From positions 9,796,001-9,860,000 of the forward strand of contig OZ059894.1 in NCBI GenBank assembly GCA_964057225.1: a stretch of 64,000 bases of DNA, written 5' to 3'. The notes under the pieces were generated by a model. The model saw nothing but the letters and a program-made list of their open reading frames with translations. It was not told where the DNA came from and ran no database searches. Every line of letters starts with the position of its first letter. Positions within the stretch are counted from its first letter, which is position 1. This document shows positions 16,427 to 40,012 of this stretch, in pieces. The stretch is from Auanema rhodensis. Taxonomy: Eukaryota > Animalia > Nematoda. Made by a program: the position numbers and the translations under genes.

Positions 16427-16893
16427 ATGCTTGTCGCACTCCTGCTCATTGCGACATCAGTCGTTTCAGGGCAGATGATGTACGGAGGATGCGGTTGCGG
16501 GTATGTTGTCCAATCCCTTTTGTGTCTCTGACGCTATTTTCACTTGAATATACAGTGTTTCCAGTATGATGGGATGTGGCTGTGGCCAGCCCACAATCAT
16601 CATACAACAGCCGCCAGTATCTCCTATTGCTCCAATGATGTCCGCACCACCTCCACCTCAACTACCTCCTCCGCCTCCACCACCACCACAAACCATGCCC
16701 ATGTCAATGCCCATGTCGATGTCCATGCCTATGCCGGTAAGTCCGAAAAGGTTGCAACTAACATGTTGCGCTTCAGATGTACCAATCATACATGTCACCA
16801 CAACCCCCACCTATTCCACCACCTCCACCACCACAAGTCATGATGGGTCCACCACCGCCTATGCAAATGGGTGGGTATGCGTACGGGAAGTAA
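16427..16893 (+). CDS. Small secreted Pro/Met-rich protein with GCGCG motifs and C-terminal Gly-Lys (3 exons: ~16427-16500, 16565-16736, 16777-16893)
   Basis: Signal peptide MLVALLLIATSVVSG, then QMMYGGCGCG-MMGCGCGQP, polyproline tracts and MPMSMPMSMSMPMP, ending MQMGGYAYGK*. AATAAA lies at 16951. Confidence 0.8.
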
Positions 16894-17097
16894 TTATTTG
16901 ACTTTTTTTTCTAGAATAATGATATTGTTGTTATTTTAATGATTCAAATCAATAAATTCATTTCATAACAATCTCACTCTCAACAAAAAAACAAGTAACA
17001 ACAGAAGAGAACTGACTATAAAAATTGTTTGGAACATTTTGAAACAAATTTACATAGTTTGCGAGAACAAACTTAATTAAGATTTAAAAGTTCTATA

Positions 17098-19728
17098 TCA
17101 CACACGAACATCGATGCTTTCTAAAGTGGGACTCTTTTCGGAAAATTGTCTATAGGCTTTATTAATAGCTGTTTTAATTGCATGCATTGAATGAGGTTTT
17201 ACAACACATCTGAAACGTTGGAATTCGACAAAAAGCCTAAGACTAGTACTAACCTAGCTGTATTTTTTCCGTCAAATGGTTCTTCAAGGTACATCTGATA
17301 ATGATGCGTGTCTGCTGACATATTTACCCTAAAACTCAAACTTTATAAGCGAATTCTGATAAACACAAATACCTCGAGAAACGTTTACCATTTCGTATTG
17401 ATATAGCATAAGTTGCAAAGTCAAAACTATGATAATAATGAAAAAATCCTATTAGCAACTCGGAAACTTTAGCATTGTTTAAAGGGCGTTCTAAATAAAG
17501 AGAAGAAAACGATTGAGCTAAAATGAAAACTGTTTACCAGGAATCCCAATAAGTTCTTGATATAAATCAAGTTTCGATAAAGGAGGCATATCAGCAAATC
17601 TTTTGGGAAATAAATACTGAAATAGAACATATTCAGTGTCATATATAAGTTAGCTGAGAACTTGTAGATTAGGAAGAACCGCAGGTCTTACTCCACATTG
17701 TAAATAATGTAGAACAAGCAGAATAAGGGAATAACTGAAAAACATTAGAGATACAAATGAGCAAAGGAATGGCTCTTCTACCTGTTTAGGGTGCCGTTCA
17801 TTGGGTCATTAACATTATTAGTAATAGCCCAATGCTTAATTAATAAGGCAAGGGAAGGAAAACGAGTATCAAATCTTAAAATAAATAAAACACATAGAGT
17901 TAGTAGAGAATACGACTCACTTAGAATAATAATGGATCAAATGAGAATTATAGATTCCAGCAATATTGTTAACATTGATATCCAGATCAAGTTCTTCATA
18001 CGGATGGTTCATTTCTACTTTAATAATTGGAACCTAGAAAATGATGAATTTCTTATTATTCAAAATATTATCCCACCTTTGCGGGAACAAAGTCAGAACG
18101 CTTAACTATCTTTTTCAAACTATGTTTATTAGCCATTGCTCCATTAATTTTCCTAAGAACTTTAATAGCCGCACTATAAAGCGATAATAACAATTGAAAC
18201 AAATTTTATAGGAATACCTTCGATCAGCAGAAAAATCTTCAGTTGTTCCTTCTCTTGGTATACATAAGCAAAGATCCATATCCGAGTTATAACTACCACA
18301 TCCATTTACAGTTGAACCAACAGCAAACATTTGAATTTGTTTACGAGGAAAAAGCTATATATTGCAATCATGTATAGAGCAACAAAGAATATATTCAACC
18401 TGATTGAAATGATCAAGGAGTAACTCTCTGACTTGCATTTTCCAAGCGTAAACCTGTGAGGACTAAAGCTCAAATAGTTAAAAAGTAAAGTATTAAAAGC
18501 ATTCAACCTGTCCGTTTCTATAATAATGAGTCCAAATCTTTTTGTCCAACTTTTCCACGGCATCTTTATGTCTATTGATAAGAAATTTAATTATTCCAAA
18601 CACTATGTGTTCTTACTTGGCTATATATTTTCCTACTTTATCTTCAAGATCAGGGGAAGCACAAAACTCAACACCTATCAAATTTCGTTCAAAATCCAAG
18701 GGTAAACTATTATCCTTGCACCACTCGGCAAAATTTTGCTTCCCTTTAAAAAAGATTAATCAGATCTACAATAATTTAGAATACCTCCAAAAAAATCTTT
18801 GGGGTTCAATGAAGCCCAAGCTTCTAAGCATTGTTCGGGATTTTGTTCTCTTTTAGGAGAACAACTGACATTTAAAGATAAATCACCTGTGTCATCCAAG
18901 CAAATTATTTCATCGTCATCAGCCACTCTCAAAGTAGCTGAAATCAAATAAGTAAAGAAAAATAGTAGATGAACGCATTACTTCCAATATCAGTTTTTCT
19001 TTTTTTCTTGTCGTTATCATCACTGACGGAATCAGAATGCTTTCTTTTTTGACTAGTAGAAGGTTGCATGAATCCTTGATCTTTTCTTTTAAGGGCAGCT
19101 TTAACTCTAACTTTCAATGACCTAGCAAGAGATTTGACATAGGGATGACCTTCATCTTTTGCCTACAAAATAAAAATATATATTGATTGTTGATTAAACT
19201 ACTAATATATATATATAAATATATACATTTTTCAGTTCCTCATATGCAGAAACACTCAAATATTTTTCGATGAATTGAAAAACATTAACTATTTCTATTA
19301 TTTCAGCCGTTGCGTGCGACTGAAAAGATAATAATTGAAACAAAAAGATCAAAACTATCATACCCATTTAGTTCTGATAACTTTTACTGATTCCTTTGTA
19401 ATATAACCATTTTCTAGAAACGAAAGGAAATTAAAAGCTAAATTAGCATCTGCAGCTCTACAAAATATACACTATAGCTTTGAGGTAGAGGAATTAAATT
19501 TTACTCATGATTTTGCCCTTCTCCTTTAACGCCAATAACACTATAAGGTATTCCTTGGAAACCGCAAGTAACTTCGAATAAACCAGCTGTTAAGAGAATA
19601 TGAATTTAGTGATAAAGCGATAATATACCTTCTCTCCTTGTGCGTTTAAAGACTGGCATACGGCCCCATTGTTTACCTATTTCTTTTATGAACTGCATTT
19701 TAAATTCTCTAAATTCGAAAAACGCCAT
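17098..19728 (-). CDS. GLD-2/Cid1-family non-canonical nucleotidyltransferase (poly(A) polymerase-like, possibly gldr-2-related) with N-terminal dsRBD-like domain
   Basis: Catalytic motif VGSTVNGCGSYNSDMDLCL (~18260-18320), third Asp in ELDLDINVNNIAGIYNSHLI, LLIKHWA, GTLNSYSLILLVLHYLQCG and PAP-associated YLEEPFDGKNTARCV. The N-terminal exon chain was traced in frame from ATG 19728 to the catalytic core; TGA is at 17098-17100. Confidence 0.9.
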
Positions 19729-20185
19729 TATGAAAAAAATATTACACATACAATTTCTCCATGTCGCCTAGCTGTGACATTTCATGCAGCCTTGATTTTC
19801 TTCGAGCATTTTTGCCCTTTCCCATCCTATCAACAAACGTATTGGAAAAGTGTAACATAAATATTTAGATAATTGTTAAATCTAGGTTTACCACTCAAAC
19901 CACTTTACATAGAAAATATTAAGAAATACTATCCACTTTTTTAGAAAAAGATGCTTTAAACATGGAAAAAAGTTAAGATACTTAGCATTAGAGCACGAAT
20001 TCCACAAATGAAATAATTGAAGCTGGTTGATGTTTCATAACATATACATTATCGATTTCTATTGAAATAGTGATTTTAAAGTGTCATATTGTTTTGCTAA
20101 TAATTATACAATATTGCTTAATTTTATTTTACTACTAATTATTATTTATAAATAAATTATTCAACACAAATAAAACTTGAACGAA

Positions 20186-23100
20186 ATGGACATGGAAAAA
20201 CAATCATTTTCTCTTATGAAGGTTTTCTAATACTATAATATTTGAATTCATTGCCATTTTCAGAGACCAAATAAAGGTGAAATTGGTAAACCAATTAATG
20301 CTCTAGTCAACTACTTCACATTTTCTAAACATATATTAAACAGAGAAGTATGTTAGTTGACATAAATATCGTTATCATTTTACTCCAGGTATTTGAATAT
20401 GAAGTTAGAATTTTTAAAATTGATGAGAGAAGGCCAAAAGGAAAAAGTCAGCAAGGGGTTCAACCTGTGGAAAAAGATATTACTAATAAGTAAAAAAAGT
20501 TTCATTGAAACATTTACCACCAAGCTATAGGACACTTCGTTCCTCCATTTTTTGGGACTTAGTGGAGTTCGAAAAGCTAAGGTTTTATGCATTTGACGAT
20601 TGGAATACCGCGTTTTCTTCCAAAGACTATACAGATTATATTCAACTCACAAAAGTTATTGAAGCCCCACCTAATATGCGAAATGTAACGGTTAAATCAA
20701 AGAAACCTGTGATCATTCTCTGATTCAGAAATGTGAAAGTAGATTTCGGGTACAAATGAAGAAGATAAATCAATATAAAATTAATTTAATTCATCAAGAT
20801 CCAGGAATAGCACAACGTTCCGAATTAGCATTGAAATGTTTTATCACACAGGGCGTGAGATACCCATATAATAAGAATAGGTTGAATATCAGAATGAAAA
20901 ATATAATTAAAGTATTTTCAGTACCAACTTTTGCTATTACAATGGTTCTATATATCCGATTCCTCGTACAGAGGCTGACGGCTGGAAAGTATATATTTTT
21001 TTATTTAATTTTTCAAGAGAGTTTCATTCTGTTCAGGTCAAAATATTCGATAATATTGAAGCATGGTTGGGGTTGTATGCCGGTGTTCGAACTATTGAAA
21101 ACTTTGACACAGTTGTTAGCTTCAGAAGTACGGATAAGGAAAAAACTTGCGTCTAAAAAATGATTTCAGTCACTCACAAGCTGTTTGAAATGATGAACAT
21201 TGATTTAGTAACTTTTTTTGTGGAAGTATTAAATACGGTAATGACTAGAATGCTTTAACATGTTTAGATTTTCTTTTTATAGATAGATGAACGTGAGAAA
21301 GATTGGAGGTGCAAAATTCCAAACATGACTATTAAACCTTTGGAACGCAGCCGTTTTACTGAAGCTGTGAAGGGCTGTCGCGTTAAAGCTTTCAAAGAGT
21401 TTGGAGCGTTAATGTTTGATAAAGAAAGACGCCCATTCTTAGCTGAAAGGCATTTCAAAGTGGACGATATTATAGGTATGTTTTATATTTATATTTTCCA
21501 CGCAAATTTTTTCGTTCTCAGAAGAAACAGCTAATAATTTTTTTGTGCATGGTAAATGTATTGCCGAATGGTATTATATACTTTATAAAGAGTTGAAGTT
21601 GGTAATTATTATGTAAATTTAAAAATATATTCAATTAGATATCCCAATCTACAATTAGCGAAAGTAAAATATGGAAAAACGGGTGTATCTTACATTCCAT
21701 TAGAGGTTTGCTTGTCAATTCAAATTTATAGTATTTGTTAATATTGAAGGTTCTGTTTACATATGATACTCCAGAAAGATATCGCAAAAATTTTCCATAC
21801 TTCTTTAGTAAACAACAATATATCAGGGTTTCACTTTTATTGATTATTATTTTATTAAAATAAATTCAGAAAGTTAGTCATAAACCGTCGGAGTATGCCA
21901 GATTATTACATGATACAATTGACAAAATTAATGAATCATCAAAGTTTATGGAAACCGATAGTGTAAGATTTATTTTCTAAGCAATCTTCAGCTTGTTTTG
22001 AACATTTTTAGCCTCAAATAGTTCCTGAATTAATGAAAGTGACTGGACGAATCCTCCCACCTCCTAAACTTCGAGACACCGTCTGTTGTTAGCATGTATA
22101 CCATTTACATTAAGAAAATGTTTTAGAATGGGAGGATTCTTGATATTTATGCTGATGGTCGATATCGCTCTTTGGCTTTGAACGGTTCTCTAGCAGTCTT
22201 TAATTTGGAAAACAGTTAATCAGATTTCAGAGTGTCCTCAACTTCCGGTAGAGTTTTCAGTCCTGATACACTATTTTCAAAAGGGCAGTAGGAGCAATCT
22301 CGCTTCTGTATCTAATGATGATGCTAGGTTAAATTCTATCTATTTCTTCATTTTATTCTCATTCTTAGAATTTTTTTCAATAGCTTGATCGCTTGCCTGA
22401 AAGAACGTGGCTTAACGTTAAACGACGATTTGCCTCAAGTCTATAAGGTAATGAAAATCACACCGATAACTTGAAAAAACTTTTTCTATTTTAGACGTTC
22501 AAACCAAATATTCCAGCAGAAAGAGGAAAATATGGAGAATTTTGTGACATAGAAACGGTTTCACGTTAATCTTTTTATTAATTACAAAGTTTATTAAGGC
22601 CGTCGAAAATCAAATTCATAGTTGGTGTAACAGATATGGTCCAGAATTTCGCAGTAAAATTTCTCCAATATTTCTAATTTTTATCTCAAACGTAGCTGAT
22701 GAGAATATTTATGGTGAATGTATACTGCTAGAAAACTTATAATGATACATTTTTTCCAGGATTTATTAAATTACTCCTTGATAATAAATATGGAATAGTT
22801 AGCCAAGTTGTGGAAAGAACCGTGGTTTCGCAAGCTTTAAAAACCATCACTGAATCAAAGTTATAAGGATGTATTACATAATTCTAAGTTTCTGATATTT
22901 TCAGGTCAATTTTTTATAATATAGCTCTGAAAATTAATTCAAAATTGGGTGGCCTGAACATAACTGCTGACCTTCCAAAAATACAAGATCTTGAACCAGA
23001 TAAACCTAAGTAATTCTAGTGAATTTGAAAACTTTGATATGTATATTCTTTAGTGAAATAATGTATATTGGGATAGATGTTACCCATCCACCTCCAATTG

Positions 23101-24201
23101 ACAGTAATGCAACTACCGACACACAGAATATGGATATATCCTTAGCTGCAATGGTTGGAAGCATAGATTCTTCGGGAACAAGGTAAAATGTTTCAAAAAA
23201 CAGGAAAAATACGATATTAACAGATATGTATATGAACCTTATGCTCAAATGCAAATGAAAGAGCAGGTTGAGTGCTTTGATAATCAATTTCAAAGATTAA
23301 TGTTCAAATTTCACGATGTAAGTCTTGTTTTTGGTATAAATTGCTATCTTTATCTCAGGTGAATAAATGCTTCCCCAAACATATTGTTATATATCGAGAT
23401 GGAGTAAGTAATAGCCAGCTTTTGGAAACAGCTTCAACTGAGCTACATTGGATAAAGTAGGAATATAGCTGTCCGTACTGTCTTTAATTGAGTTTTCAGA
23501 AAATCTTGGAAGCAGATTCAAAGAGGATATGACGAAATTGAAATGCCTATGTTCACTTACATCGTTGTTCAAAAACGTCATCAAACAAGATACTTCATGC
23601 CATCTAAATCAAATGGGGAGCTAGTGAATATTCCTTTCGGAAGTGTTTTTGATTCCAACGTGGTTTCACCTGTATTATTCGATTTTTGGCTTTGTGCTCA
23701 TCAAGCGAAAGAAAATGTTAGATTTCTGAAAGCTGTCTCCAAAATTAATTTCTTATCCTTTAAGTCTACGGCAAGACCTATCCACTACATTGTTGCTTAT
23801 GATGACAGAAATCTCACGTCTGATGAAATATATGTGAGTAATCCTACTCAAATTAACCTTTCTATATTCTATTTAGGAGATGACCTATCGTCTCTGCTTT
23901 CTGAATGCTCGTTGTAGAGGAGCAATATCGCTACCTTCTCCCATACACTATGCGAATTTGGTATGCTTAAAGCTAAAGGACAAGTATAAAGCTTTGATGA
24001 GGTTTAACATTTTTTTTTCAAAATTTTATACTTTTTTTGGTCCTCTTGGGGGGGGGTGTACCAAACAAATCAACCAATTAAAACTAATATATCGATTTTT
24101 TCAGAAATGAAGAAGTTTTCCCAAATCTTATTGAACAAAAGGCGCTTATTGAAGATCATTTAAAGAGACACGATGAGTATCCGGGAATGTGCTTTACATG
24201 A
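20186..24201 (+). CDS. rde-1: Argonaute, RDE-1-like (N, PAZ, MID, PIWI; ~28 exons, apparently intact)
   Basis: N-terminal RPNKGEIGKPINALVNYF, PAZ KYPNLQLAKVKYGKTGVSYIPLE, MID IYGFIK..SQ..SIFYNIALKINSKLGGLN, and PIWI MYIGIDVTHP, HIVIYRDGVS, VVQKRH, TARPIHY, MTYRLCFLNARCRGAISLPSPIHYANL. The C-terminus YPGMCFT* resembles RDE-1 YPGMSFA. The Argonaute call is firm; strict rde-1 orthology is less certain. Confidence 0.9.
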
Positions 24202-26003
24202 TTTTATTGATCTTAATATACAAAAAAAATTAAATAAATATATTAATTTACTAAATAATCTGTAATTAACAATAGAAAAATATAATATATTTTATGAATG
24301 CGTACAACCGTTTATGCAAAATGTTTTGGGGAAAATGAGAGTTTGATAAGTTCACGTAATTGCATGAGGTTCATTCAATTATTATTCGAAATGTTGATGG
24401 ATTTGTTTTAATAAAAAGAAATAATGTAATTAAGATGTAAAATCTTTTTAAATATGACTAATATCTTATGTAACATTATAAATTGTAGTTTAACATCTAA
24501 TGTACTGTGTTAAACATTATAGATAATTAAACAAAAAATGAATTAAAAGTGTTTTCGTAAAAAGAAGCAATAAAAATCAGTTATATTTCCCATTTCTCAC
24601 ATATTCGTATATAATGTTTTACAGTTCAATGGCATCAATGTGCCTTATGGTCTATGTGTGTGAGTGCTGCGGCTACACCTTTCTTTTTCACCCATCTATT
24701 CAATCATCATTCACTCATTACTATCTGCTTGGATTCTTTCAGGCCAATTATTGATTTTGTGAATCCATGGTATTTGTTTATTCAAATACATTTTACCAAT
24801 TGAAATGCTTTTAAGCTTTGGTAATGATCATGTTGTTAGCATGTTCTTCTTCATTATTTTAGTCAGATGGTTATATCTCTTACTTTGAATAATTTCTGGA
24901 ACCTCATTTTCTTATAATCAAAATCAATGAGAAAACCAACTTTACTATGAGATAACCCATAGTTCAAGCTATTTACTCACTTTTCTTATTCTCTTCATAG
25001 AATGTTTTCTCAATGCTATCACAAAATCTTCATGTTTTATATAAATTGTATTTATATGACTATCGATAGGTTTCGTCATTTTCTCACAATGCAAAATTTT
25101 TTCTCCTTTTTCAAACTTTCCCATGTTTTTTATACATAGAAATTTGTCTTTATACGGTAATGTTGAACACGTCCTTCTTTCTTATTATTTCCGAAAAATA
25201 TTGTGATATATACTAAATTTCCTTCATATTTCTTTTAATATTGCCTAAATATATATTTTTTGATATTAATATAGTTAAGTATGCAGTGGTGACTTGTTAA
25301 TTGAGGTTATTACTATTAGGAAACAAAAAGGCTGCCTGAATTGTATGCTACCAGATGTTCTTCTGTTATTCTCGCGTTTTTCTATTCTTTGGGGTCGAGA
25401 GAATAAGAGAAAAGACCTCTAACACATATGAGTAATGAGGTCTGTCTCTTGAACAACTACAGAAAAGGTTTGGCAATTGATGTTCATTTAGAAGAGAGCT
25501 TGTCCCACATCCGCACCTCATCAACGGAAAGAGGAGATGAAGGGGGGTGCCAATGTGGCCAAACCTGCTTAACCGATCTGTATCTATACGATTCTATTTG
25601 CTTGTCGTCCTGCTTCTCACTTATGAAAGTTCAAATGTCGACAGACGGAGATAGTACTGATGATGAGATTAATGCAAGAGTAAATGAGGAGAAACGAGAG
25701 AAACAAAGACAGAAGGATCTGTCGCTCGACCATTCTATCTGTCTGCTCATTTTGCGTCCAGCCTCTCCTTCGCCATTCCTCAGTCAGTTTGTTGACCCTA
25801 ATGCTTATACAAATTGGTTTTATACTAGATCTGATTTGACATAGTTGATTGCTAATCGTTTTCACAGCCTATTGCATATACCATACCTGAATGAATCTGC
25901 CATTTTCATCTTGTGTTCCGCTCATTTTTCTTTCATTTCACCCCATCATTAGTTATTTTTATATTTTTTAGAAATTCTTCTCATGTCACATGACTGATAT
26001 TGC

Positions 26004-38303: not shown

Positions 38304-40012
38304 CTAAGAAGATGGGCATGTTGGTGCTGGTGTGAAAACATTGAGAATGTTAACCAACGGGAACATGATAGCAGTTCCAACAAAGGAGCCAATCTGAAAG
38401 CATTGTTTCAATTAACAGAGTTGCAACAAAGCTTACTTGAATAAAGACACCACACCAGAAAAGCTGATTTTCGCTTTTTCTACCTTCTCTTAGAAGGGAA
38501 GCAAAAACAATTCGTAAATACGAATGAATTCCAGCCGCAATCAATGAAGATGTAATCTATAATTTTCTTTTTTACATTATGTTCTGAAACAAAACAAACC
38601 GCAAGAGCACTTCCGGCAGATACTGAATTGAAAATTAAGCTAGGGCTGAGAGCTGCTAAGTAAACGATAAAGCCAGTAACAAGAGATGATATTGCAGTTA
38701 GTACTGCCAAAATAGGAATAGATCTGCAAAAGTTCAAATTTAAAACGCAGTCAGAATTAAATATACCTGATGGTCAAGAAAAATGGAGCAAAAGAAGCAA
38801 TTGGAGATATAACATTAGCCAAAACAACACTGTAGTGATATGTAGACTGAAAGAAGAAGAAGACTAATTTGGAAAAGGTGACATCAAAGTACCTGAGAAT
38901 ATGGTAAAGTAGCGTAACTTTGAATACTAGTAATAACTCCATTCATTTGCGCATTAACCAAAGCTGTTCCAATAAGTACAAGAACAATTTGAGTAAATGA
39001 TAAGCTATTTTCCCCATTAGTAGAATCATTAGTCTGGAGAAGTACAAGTTGTAACTAAGCTAAAGAGCTATTACCAAAACCTGATTGCGTTGAGCATTAT
39101 TAGAATCAGTATTTTCCAACTCATTGATAGAACCTGCTCTGCTTAATGGAGTTCCTTCATGAACTTCATCGTTTGGTTTATTAGTAGAACTAAAAGTTTC
39201 AAAGAAAAGTGATTAAAGAGGGTGATTTGCTTCAAGTGAACTAACTCTTTATGTGCTCCCATTCGATAAAGTATGAAGAAACAGAAAGCAGCAAGTAAGG
39301 TCCAGAAGAAGATTACTAGGAAAAATATGGAAACCGAGAAATGAGGGGGGTCATATTTAGGCTGAGAGCCAATACAAGCATAATTGCCGGTTCCTGAAAA
39401 AAACTTTTGAAATTTTTAAAAGAAATGAGCATACCTTGGATTAAGGATAGCAAACTTGGAACCAAAGCACTACATCCCATACCAACAAAATAGGCATTCA
39501 GATATGCAATGTGAAATTGAGCCATAAATGGGAGAAATAGTACATTTGATATGGAATTAACAAGAGCTAATCCAAATATTAACGCATATAATGCTACTGA
39601 GTAATGTTTGTGTCCGACAACAGCAGTAGCATCCCAGAAAAAGACAAGACCTACATGATCTAATGTTAGAAAAAGCATGAAAGCCTAGCTACTAACCTAA
39701 CTGGCAAACACATGCCAATACTAAAAAAAAGGAAATAAGAGGAACTGTGGGAAGAGGTAATTTAGGGAATCCTTTATGAATAATCGAATATACTAATGGT
39801 CCTATACATCCAATCTACAAAAGGAAATATGACAAATGAGACAAAAAGTTAAATCTTACTTGAACCACACAAGCTAAGTAACTAGGTAACGTCCATTCTT
39901 CAGGAAGAGCAGCAGTCAGTAATGGGAGCTGCATCCATACTGAGTTGGTTCCTATCCATGAACTGGAACCGAAGATGACCACAAGTATGAAAACGCTGAT
40001 AGAAATAGTCAT
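38304..40012 (-). CDS. rft-2: Riboflavin transporter SLC52/RFVT family
   Basis: IFGSSSWIGTNSVWMQLPLLTAALPEEWTLPSYL, SNVLFLPFMAQF..YLNAYFVGMGCSALVPSLLSLIQG and LFWCGVFIQIGSFVGTAIMFPLVNI. The choice of rft-2 over rft-1 is tentative. Confidence 0.9.

Follow-up and report, generated by a model that had tools for sequence, protein, structure and literature searches.

A head-to-head Argonaute gene and GLD-2-family transferase gene in the nematode Auanema rhodensis

Two genes of small-RNA-pathway families stand head-to-head at positions 17098-24201 of the stretch of Auanema rhodensis DNA analyzed here, a 64,000-nucleotide piece of contig OZ059894.1 that we call the window and whose numbering is used throughout. 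The gene on the forward (+) strand encodes an Argonaute, and the gene on the reverse (-) strand encodes an RNA-tailing nucleotidyltransferase of the GLD-2 family. A first-pass annotation, made from the letters without database searches, had described two intact divergent genes, as they prove to be, with complete open reading frames (ORFs) and GT..AG introns; it had further proposed that they form a dedicated, co-regulated Argonaute-plus-tailing unit, which is unsupported, as none of seven other nematode species has a transferase beside the orthologous Argonaute. The reading that we favor on balance is that these are two separate, functional small-RNA-pathway genes that lie head-to-head in this rhabditid lineage, the one most likely a single-copy RDE-1-type Argonaute and the other most likely a GLDR-2-type paralog.

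The region is intron-rich and eukaryotic, with open frames that are short and interrupted, and both gene models draw on RNA contigs from four public runs (X1-X4) of one study; about half of the sampled words of window positions 17000-24300 are present in the whole of this four-run RNA set. The contigs were compared with the genome over 18230-24229, a range that leaves the transferase exons below 18230 outside it, and across this range there are zero differing letters. They contain 37 splice joints, of which the 15 listed skip 41-47 bases each; those of the right-hand gene (the Argonaute) have GT..AG borders on the + strand, and those of the left-hand gene (the transferase) have CT..AC borders. 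Spliced joints with such borders establish that the four runs are RNA and that both genes are transcribed and spliced; each of the four runs yields spliced contigs of the one gene and of the other. The contigs leave the true transcription start sites unmapped, and contig depth cannot rank the genes for expression.

The Argonaute coding sequence spans 20186..24201 (+) in 28 exons and encodes 924 aa. Its model comes from a search for chains of exons, joined across GT..AG introns, that add up to the lengths required by the contig coordinates, with two ambiguous exon pairs decided by homology to CAI4226101.1 (P0001) of Auanema sp. JU1783, and it agrees with the Pfam Piwi match described below. The exons run 20186-20221, 20264-20347, 20389-20489, 20531-20684, 20729-20880, 20922-20988 and 21037-21127 (exons 1-7); 21170-21237, 21283-21475, 21522-21597, 21639-21705, 21750-21827, 21870-21962 and 22012-22080 (exons 8-14); 22127-22184, 22231-22327, 22369-22447, 22495-22557, 22599-22713, 22760-22859 and 22905-23009 (exons 15-21); and 23054-23182, 23224-23317, 23359-23456, 23500-23716, 23765-23833, 23877-24001 and 24105-24201 (exons 22-28), with the stop codon at 24199-24201. 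The start at ATG 20186, already chosen in the first pass, has no other in-frame ATG between it and the preceding stop. Upstream of this start lies a 5' untranslated region (UTR; 19996..20185) of at least 190 nt, reached by contigs from 19996 in X2 and from 20026 in X1 and X4, which holds two tiny upstream ORFs (uORFs) with ATGs at 20008 and 20030 (together spanning 20008-20062).

The Argonaute introns measure 41-49 nt except for the last (24002-24104), which at 103 nt is the sole intron longer than 64 nt in either gene; it contains a run of nine G and has no Rfam match. Splicing at intron 3 (20490-20530) varies among the runs: the intron is retained in the X1 contig, where it brings in an in-frame TAA at 20490-20492, and it is spliced to the acceptor at 20531 in X2 and X3. 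An X4 contig piece starting at 20524 suggests an alternative acceptor at 20525, giving a product two codons longer.

On the opposite strand, the transferase coding sequence occupies 17098..19825 (-) in 19 exons and encodes 635 aa, or 11 aa more if translation begins at the in-frame alternative ATG at 19858. Given from high to low coordinates, its exons are 19825-19752, 19708-19629, 19586-19505, 19457-19364, 19319-19227, 19162-18982 and 18937-18785 (exons 1-7); 18743-18617, 18571-18508, 18462-18400, 18354-18218, 18173-18077 and 18033-17921 (exons 8-13); and 17874-17782, 17734-17662, 17616-17538, 17490-17373, 17328-17254 and 17209-17098 (exons 14-19), the stop codon being 17100-17098. Nine of the listed RNA joints establish most of the introns in the 5' half, as far as 18355; intron 5 (19226-19163), intron 11 and every exon below 18230 are based on GT..AG sites, the open frame and matches to Caenorhabditis elegans GLD-2. 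All of the introns fall within 41-49 nt apart from one of 64 nt.

The RNA changes the beginning of this gene. The start that had been assigned to it, ATG 19728, lies inside a 43-nt intron (19709..19751, -) whose joint, 19708/19752, with CT..AC borders, is present in all four runs; since the ATG is spliced out in every run, it is not the start. The first coding exon is instead 19825-19752, which begins MGKGKNARRK, and the joints add a further exon, 19319-19227, to the earlier model. Together with its 5' UTR the first exon extends over 19752..19972, with contigs reaching 19951, 19927 and 19972 in three runs, and within this UTR short uORFs begin at the ATGs 19963 and 19910 (-).

Because the transferase start moves from 19728 to 19825, the distance between the two start codons, earlier put at about 457 bp, shrinks to 360 bp (19826..20185), or 327 bp with ATG 19858. 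The spacer is as AT-rich as had been claimed, with 23.6% GC overall and 23-28% GC in 300-bp windows; it contains no repeats and no Rfam match, and the same is true of the introns. Between the ends of the longest contigs of the two genes, at 19972 (-) and 19996 (+), lies an untranscribed gap of just 23 bp, 19973-19995. Many divergent nematode gene pairs share one promoter region, and a shared promoter region is plausible here: of the bidirectional promoter proposed in the first pass, what stands is that both genes are expressed in the same four libraries and that their contigs end 23 bp apart, at the resolution that contigs afford. On such an arrangement the starts of the two mRNAs would be no more than a few tens of bases apart, inside the 360-bp AT-rich spacer, and the Argonaute and the transferase would probably share one nucleosome-free promoter region.

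The identity of the + strand gene is clear at the level of the family. The Pfam Piwi domain (PF02171) was found on 23492-23914 with an E value of 2.8e-17, accompanied by weaker matches on two further exons. Exons 25-26, read through the in-frame 48-nt intron between them, returned 748 matches in a full-library search, the best with 52% identity over the conserved stretch. In the PAZ region the one exon scanned gave no Pfam match; the protein is colinear with P0072, which has ArgoN, ArgoL1 and PAZ domains. A scan of the A. rhodensis genome itself finds about 8 Piwi loci, and the clusters of the protein atlas carry only generic 'Piwi domain' names.

The joined protein models were compared with fetched sequences by blastp, tblastn, MAFFT and IQ-TREE. 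The closest full-length relative of the Argonaute is CAI4226101.1, to which it is identical at 40% of the 922 positions aligned. Identity is 29-33% to the proteins of Parelaphostrongylus, Caenorhabditis angaria (two copies), C. bovis and Pristionchus mayeri, and the Caenorhabditis members of the orthogroup lie at about 29-30%. With P0001 used as a proxy, human AGO1-4 are matched at E values of 1e-41 to 1e-44, vs 1e-25 to 1e-31 for PIWI/Siwi. In a maximum-likelihood tree (IQ-TREE) of 61 full-length proteins, rooted on PIWI proteins and built with the named C. elegans Argonautes left out, the window Argonaute is sister to the Auanema sp. JU1783 protein (SH-aLRT 100), and both are nested in a Rhabditina clade (support 100) whose branching matches the species tree and whose sister group consists of filarial and ascarid proteins. 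Judged by these comparisons, the protein is an AGO-clade Argonaute with a Piwi domain and a member of a nematode orthogroup, and to that extent the original identification was right.

The orthogroup holds single-copy Caenorhabditis, strongylid and Pristionchus proteins and is near single-copy overall, C. angaria having two copies. When the Auanema sp. JU1783, C. bovis and Parelaphostrongylus members are searched against the A. rhodensis genome, each matches the window gene best, which is therefore the single local member of this conserved nematode orthogroup.

Most likely this orthogroup corresponds to RDE-1, as had been proposed, by three pointers rather than tests. In the literature, Caenorhabditis species carry a mean of 1.14 copies of RDE-1, while ERGO-1 is volatile, with a mean of 2.8; because the orthogroup is near single-copy, RDE-1 fits it better than ERGO-1 does. 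The C. bovis ortholog adjoins GDA1_CD39 and TRAPP genes. Such genes are neighbors of rde-1, which the literature gives as K08H10.7, on the same C. elegans cosmid. The third pointer is a resemblance in sequence between C. elegans RDE-1 and the C. angaria protein. The alternative that survives best, although we judge it unlikely, is that the Argonaute belongs to another AGO-clade subfamily, ERGO-1 or ALG-3/4-like, in which case it would bind 26G-type endogenous small interfering RNAs. The tree, built as it was without named C. elegans sequences, leaves room for such an assignment, and in the literature distant nematode Argonautes switch among the RDE-1, ERGO-1 and ALG-3/4 groupings from one analysis to another; set against this are an orthogroup that tracks the species tree at near single copy, closer to the RDE-1 mean than to the ERGO-1 mean, and the neighbors of the C. 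bovis gene, which are also those of rde-1.

Within the RDE-1-type Argonaute so identified, the catalytic tetrad is altered. Its D, E and D are encoded at 23076-23078, 23261-23263 and 23398-23400 (+), as placed by the orthogroup alignment, and are invariant in it. The fourth residue is Asn (AAT, 23955-23957, +), as seen in the alignment of exon 27 to human AGO1-4, in the orthogroup alignment and in the RNA contigs; Asn is residue 27 of the exon 27 query and aligns with residue 807 of human AGO2, the tetrad histidine. The DEDN tetrad reported in the first pass is thus correct, with Asn at the position of human AGO2 H807, and the catalytic DEDH is incomplete in the window protein. Across the orthogroup this position is H in 10 of 12 members, D in Auanema sp. 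JU1783 and N in the window gene, and DEDN is a derived state. The 5'-phosphate pocket of the MID domain, Y-K-Q-K with positions assigned by motif, is conserved at all four columns in the window protein and 15 relatives.

In RNase H-like Argonaute active sites, an Asn at the fourth position should weaken metal binding and slicing. The window Argonaute would accordingly be expected to slice poorly or not at all, while still loading primary small RNAs. The Auanema sp. JU1783 ortholog (P0001) likewise does without the catalytic H, with D in its place. The change away from H may be older than the split of the window gene's lineage from Auanema sp. JU1783, and the H-to-N change here together with the H-to-D change there suggests a relaxed need for slicing in that branch.

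The assignment of the - strand gene to the GLD-2 family is equally direct. Exon 11 (18218..18354) carries the GS motif and the first two catalytic Asp residues (SDMDL; codons 18282-18280 and 18276-18274), matches Pfam MTPAP-like_central and NTP_transf_2, and has C. elegans GLD-2 as its best PDB match. Exon 13 (17921..18033), which bears the third catalytic Asp (codon 17982-17980), aligns end to end with residues 127-163 of C. elegans GLD-2 (chain 4zrl_A), and exon 17 (17373..17490) encodes the PAP-associated domain (Pfam PAP_assoc, PF03828, E 1.9e-9; also picked up in the scan of the genome itself), again with GLD-2 as best PDB match. C. elegans GLD-2 was thus top among solved structures for all three of these exons, closer than Cid1, TUT4/7, Tailor or MTPAP; the window enzyme shares with it the GS motif, SDMDL and the third aspartate, and the catalytic triad is intact. 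With its polymerase-beta core, PAP_assoc domain and GLD-2 as top PDB match, the gene bears out the family call of the first pass.

The genome contains at least six polymerase-beta/PAP transferase loci, and exon 13 matches just one other locus among them, G000:C7:15068502-15069054 (L006:2502-3814). Counted by eye from the printed PDB-search alignments, identity to the C. elegans GLD-2 segments is 89-100% for that locus, vs 41-52% for the window gene in the same GLD-2 motifs. Because the C7 locus is near-identical to C. elegans GLD-2, canonical gld-2 lies there, on a contig other than that of the window, and the window gene is a diverged paralog; we accordingly rejected canonical gld-2 as the name of the window gene. 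Two further polymerase-beta/PAP_assoc loci, about 2.5 kb apart at G000:C7:15793711-15796619 (L007), share about 27% identity with the window enzyme; they may represent PUP/CID-1-like genes in tandem.

Nematodes of clades III-V are known to have two GLD2-family genes, GLD-2 and GLDR-2 (F31C3.2 in C. elegans), and the C. elegans GLDR-2 protein is nuclear and mono-adenylates microRNAs, probably as precursors. Since nematodes of these clades have two such genes and the other one here is canonical gld-2, the window gene is, by elimination, most likely the GLDR-2 ortholog. It has an N-terminal extension of about 300 aa with two basic stretches resembling nuclear localization signals (NLS), in exons 1 and 6, which fit a nuclear enzyme. 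Its motif EEPFDGKNTAR is without histidine. It is a histidine that makes Cid1-type enzymes U-specific, as seen in the Cid1 structure, and the histidine-less motif suggests that the window enzyme would add A.

A double-stranded-RNA-binding-like domain (dsRBD) had also been read into the N-terminal region, over exons 2-4 (19364..19708, about aa 26-110), which is flanked by the NLS-like stretches. The likeness is one of pattern: residues ~26-110 can be read as helix, three strands, helix, and are without a basic KKxAK-like motif. Pfam and PDB searches, which covered exons 3 and 4 but not exon 2, drew no match, and a six-frame genome scan with the Pfam dsrm model gives no match at the transferase locus. 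The domain is thus unsupported exon by exon, by weak tests of low power, since a domain in this place would be divided among three exons of just 26-31 aa each.

If the two genes formed a conserved unit, the same adjacency might be seen elsewhere, and the first pass had itself held that its absence from sister species would count against the proposal. We read the orthologous Argonaute loci of Auanema sp. JU1783, C. bovis, C. angaria (two copies), Pristionchus mayeri, Parelaphostrongylus, Nippostrongylus and Acanthocheilonema. No transferase-domain gene is annotated in the DNA read around the Argonaute in any of these seven nematodes, and tblastn with the transferase model over the same neighborhoods gave no credible match (best E 0.046); for the relatives compared, none of them a close sister species, the pairing is absent in all seven species.

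What lies beside the Argonaute in these genomes differs from one lineage to another. In C. bovis and C. angaria, a TRAPP subunit gene lies about 500 bp upstream and is divergent from the Argonaute; in C. bovis and one C. angaria copy (L004:8722-9459 and L010:8419-9502) this is a TRAPP-family gene of about 180 aa standing head-to-head with it, and the Argonaute/TRAPP divergent pair is conserved within Caenorhabditis. At the P0001 locus of Auanema sp. JU1783, the divergent gene, about 300 bp upstream, encodes a Mod_r protein and the downstream neighbor is Nuf2; there is no transferase within 10 kb upstream or 4 kb downstream, and Mod_r and Nuf2 were themselves searched for near the window and not found. 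The divergent partner of this Argonaute thus changes with lineage. With partners elsewhere that are equally tight but different, a close head-to-head neighbor is typical of this gene, and such closeness is uninformative about the partner.

Farther out, the pair is flanked by GC-rich (46-49%) open frames at 16566-16901 (+) and 25428-25844 (+), neither of which has a Pfam match; one of the two, rich in proline, stops some 200 bp short of the transferase stop codon. Ten flanking ORFs scanned with Pfam yielded one match, far away. An exon of an SLC52-type riboflavin transporter lies at 39316-39675 (-) (Pfam E 1.3e-26).

Taken together, the pairing looks like a lineage-specific neighborhood, ordinary though neatly suggestive, of two mildly derived members of known families, and the juxtaposition would have arisen by local rearrangement in this lineage. 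Several points weigh against this reading of two separate genes. The RDE-1 and GLDR-2 labels come from elimination, not from trees with named C. elegans sequences, and the species compared are distant, the best having 40% Argonaute identity. An Argonaute beside a tailing enzyme named beforehand is unlikely by chance, at about 1% by a rough estimate that assumes 8 Argonaute loci, ~10 such transferases and ~20,000 genes and is not a computed result. Furthermore, a functional link is biologically possible, because microRNAs are bound by RDE-1 in C. elegans and their precursors are substrates of GLDR-2.

These same points lend some appeal to a true co-regulated module, in which a shared promoter would couple both genes and the enzyme would tail the small RNAs, precursors or targets of a slicer-impaired Argonaute. 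The orientation is divergent, only 23 bp separate the mRNA contig ends, and the same four libraries contain both genes; small-RNA pathways are the setting of both proteins, in that GLDR-2 tails microRNA precursors and RDE-1 binds microRNAs; and both are derived, the Argonaute in the N at its fourth catalytic position and the transferase in its long N-terminal extension. We nevertheless consider such a module somewhat less probable even than a different Argonaute subfamily: the pairing is absent at the orthologous Argonaute locus of all seven species read, and the same Argonaute is equally close to unrelated TRAPP and Mod_r genes in other lineages. As a functional module the pair is unproven. 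More doubtful again is the fullest form of the proposal, a shared-promoter unit in which a GLDR-2-type enzyme tails precursors, guides or targets of the DED-N RDE-1-type Argonaute and the N-terminal extension is a degenerate dsRBD, which would then recognize hairpin or duplex RNA or the Argonaute complex. That the transferase is instead the canonical germline poly(A) polymerase GLD-2 can be discounted unless the C7 locus is a pseudogene: among solved structures three of its exons do match C. elegans GLD-2 best, but in those motifs it is the C7 locus that is nearly identical to GLD-2, the window gene reaching only 41-52%.

For two neighboring but separate genes, the main present value of the locus lies in its annotation: RNA-supported gene models with a corrected transferase start, a derived H-to-N change in an Argonaute, and a transferase named as a non-canonical GLD2 paralog rather than as gld-2. 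Should the pairing prove functional, nature would have supplied a genetic hint of cooperation between a GLD2-family enzyme and an RDE-1-type Argonaute, a link that to our knowledge is not established in C. elegans.

The nearest known systems are those of C. elegans. Like the primary-siRNA- and microRNA-binding RDE-1, the window Argonaute is an AGO-clade Piwi protein of about 900-1000 aa with D-E-D and the 5'-phosphate pocket, and its near single-copy Rhabditina orthogroup contains Caenorhabditis proteins, although its orthology to RDE-1 itself is inferred; it differs from the orthogroup in having N where 10 of the 12 members have H. In the Caenorhabditis loci of this orthogroup the divergent neighbor is the TRAPP gene and not a transferase, and the C. 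elegans names gldr-2 and rde-1 come from different cosmids, F31C3 and K08H10. The transferase resembles C. elegans GLD-2 (PDB 4zrl, 5jnb) in its GS, DxD and third-D motifs and its PAP-associated domain, but at just 41-52% in the core motifs, the true ortholog elsewhere in the genome reaching about 89-100%; it resembles GLDR-2 (F31C3.2) in being the second GLD2-family gene beside canonical gld-2, with an intact triad and NLS-like stretches. Closest of all to the Argonaute is CAI4226101.1 of Auanema sp. JU1783, its sister in the tree at 40% identity, which has also lost the catalytic H.

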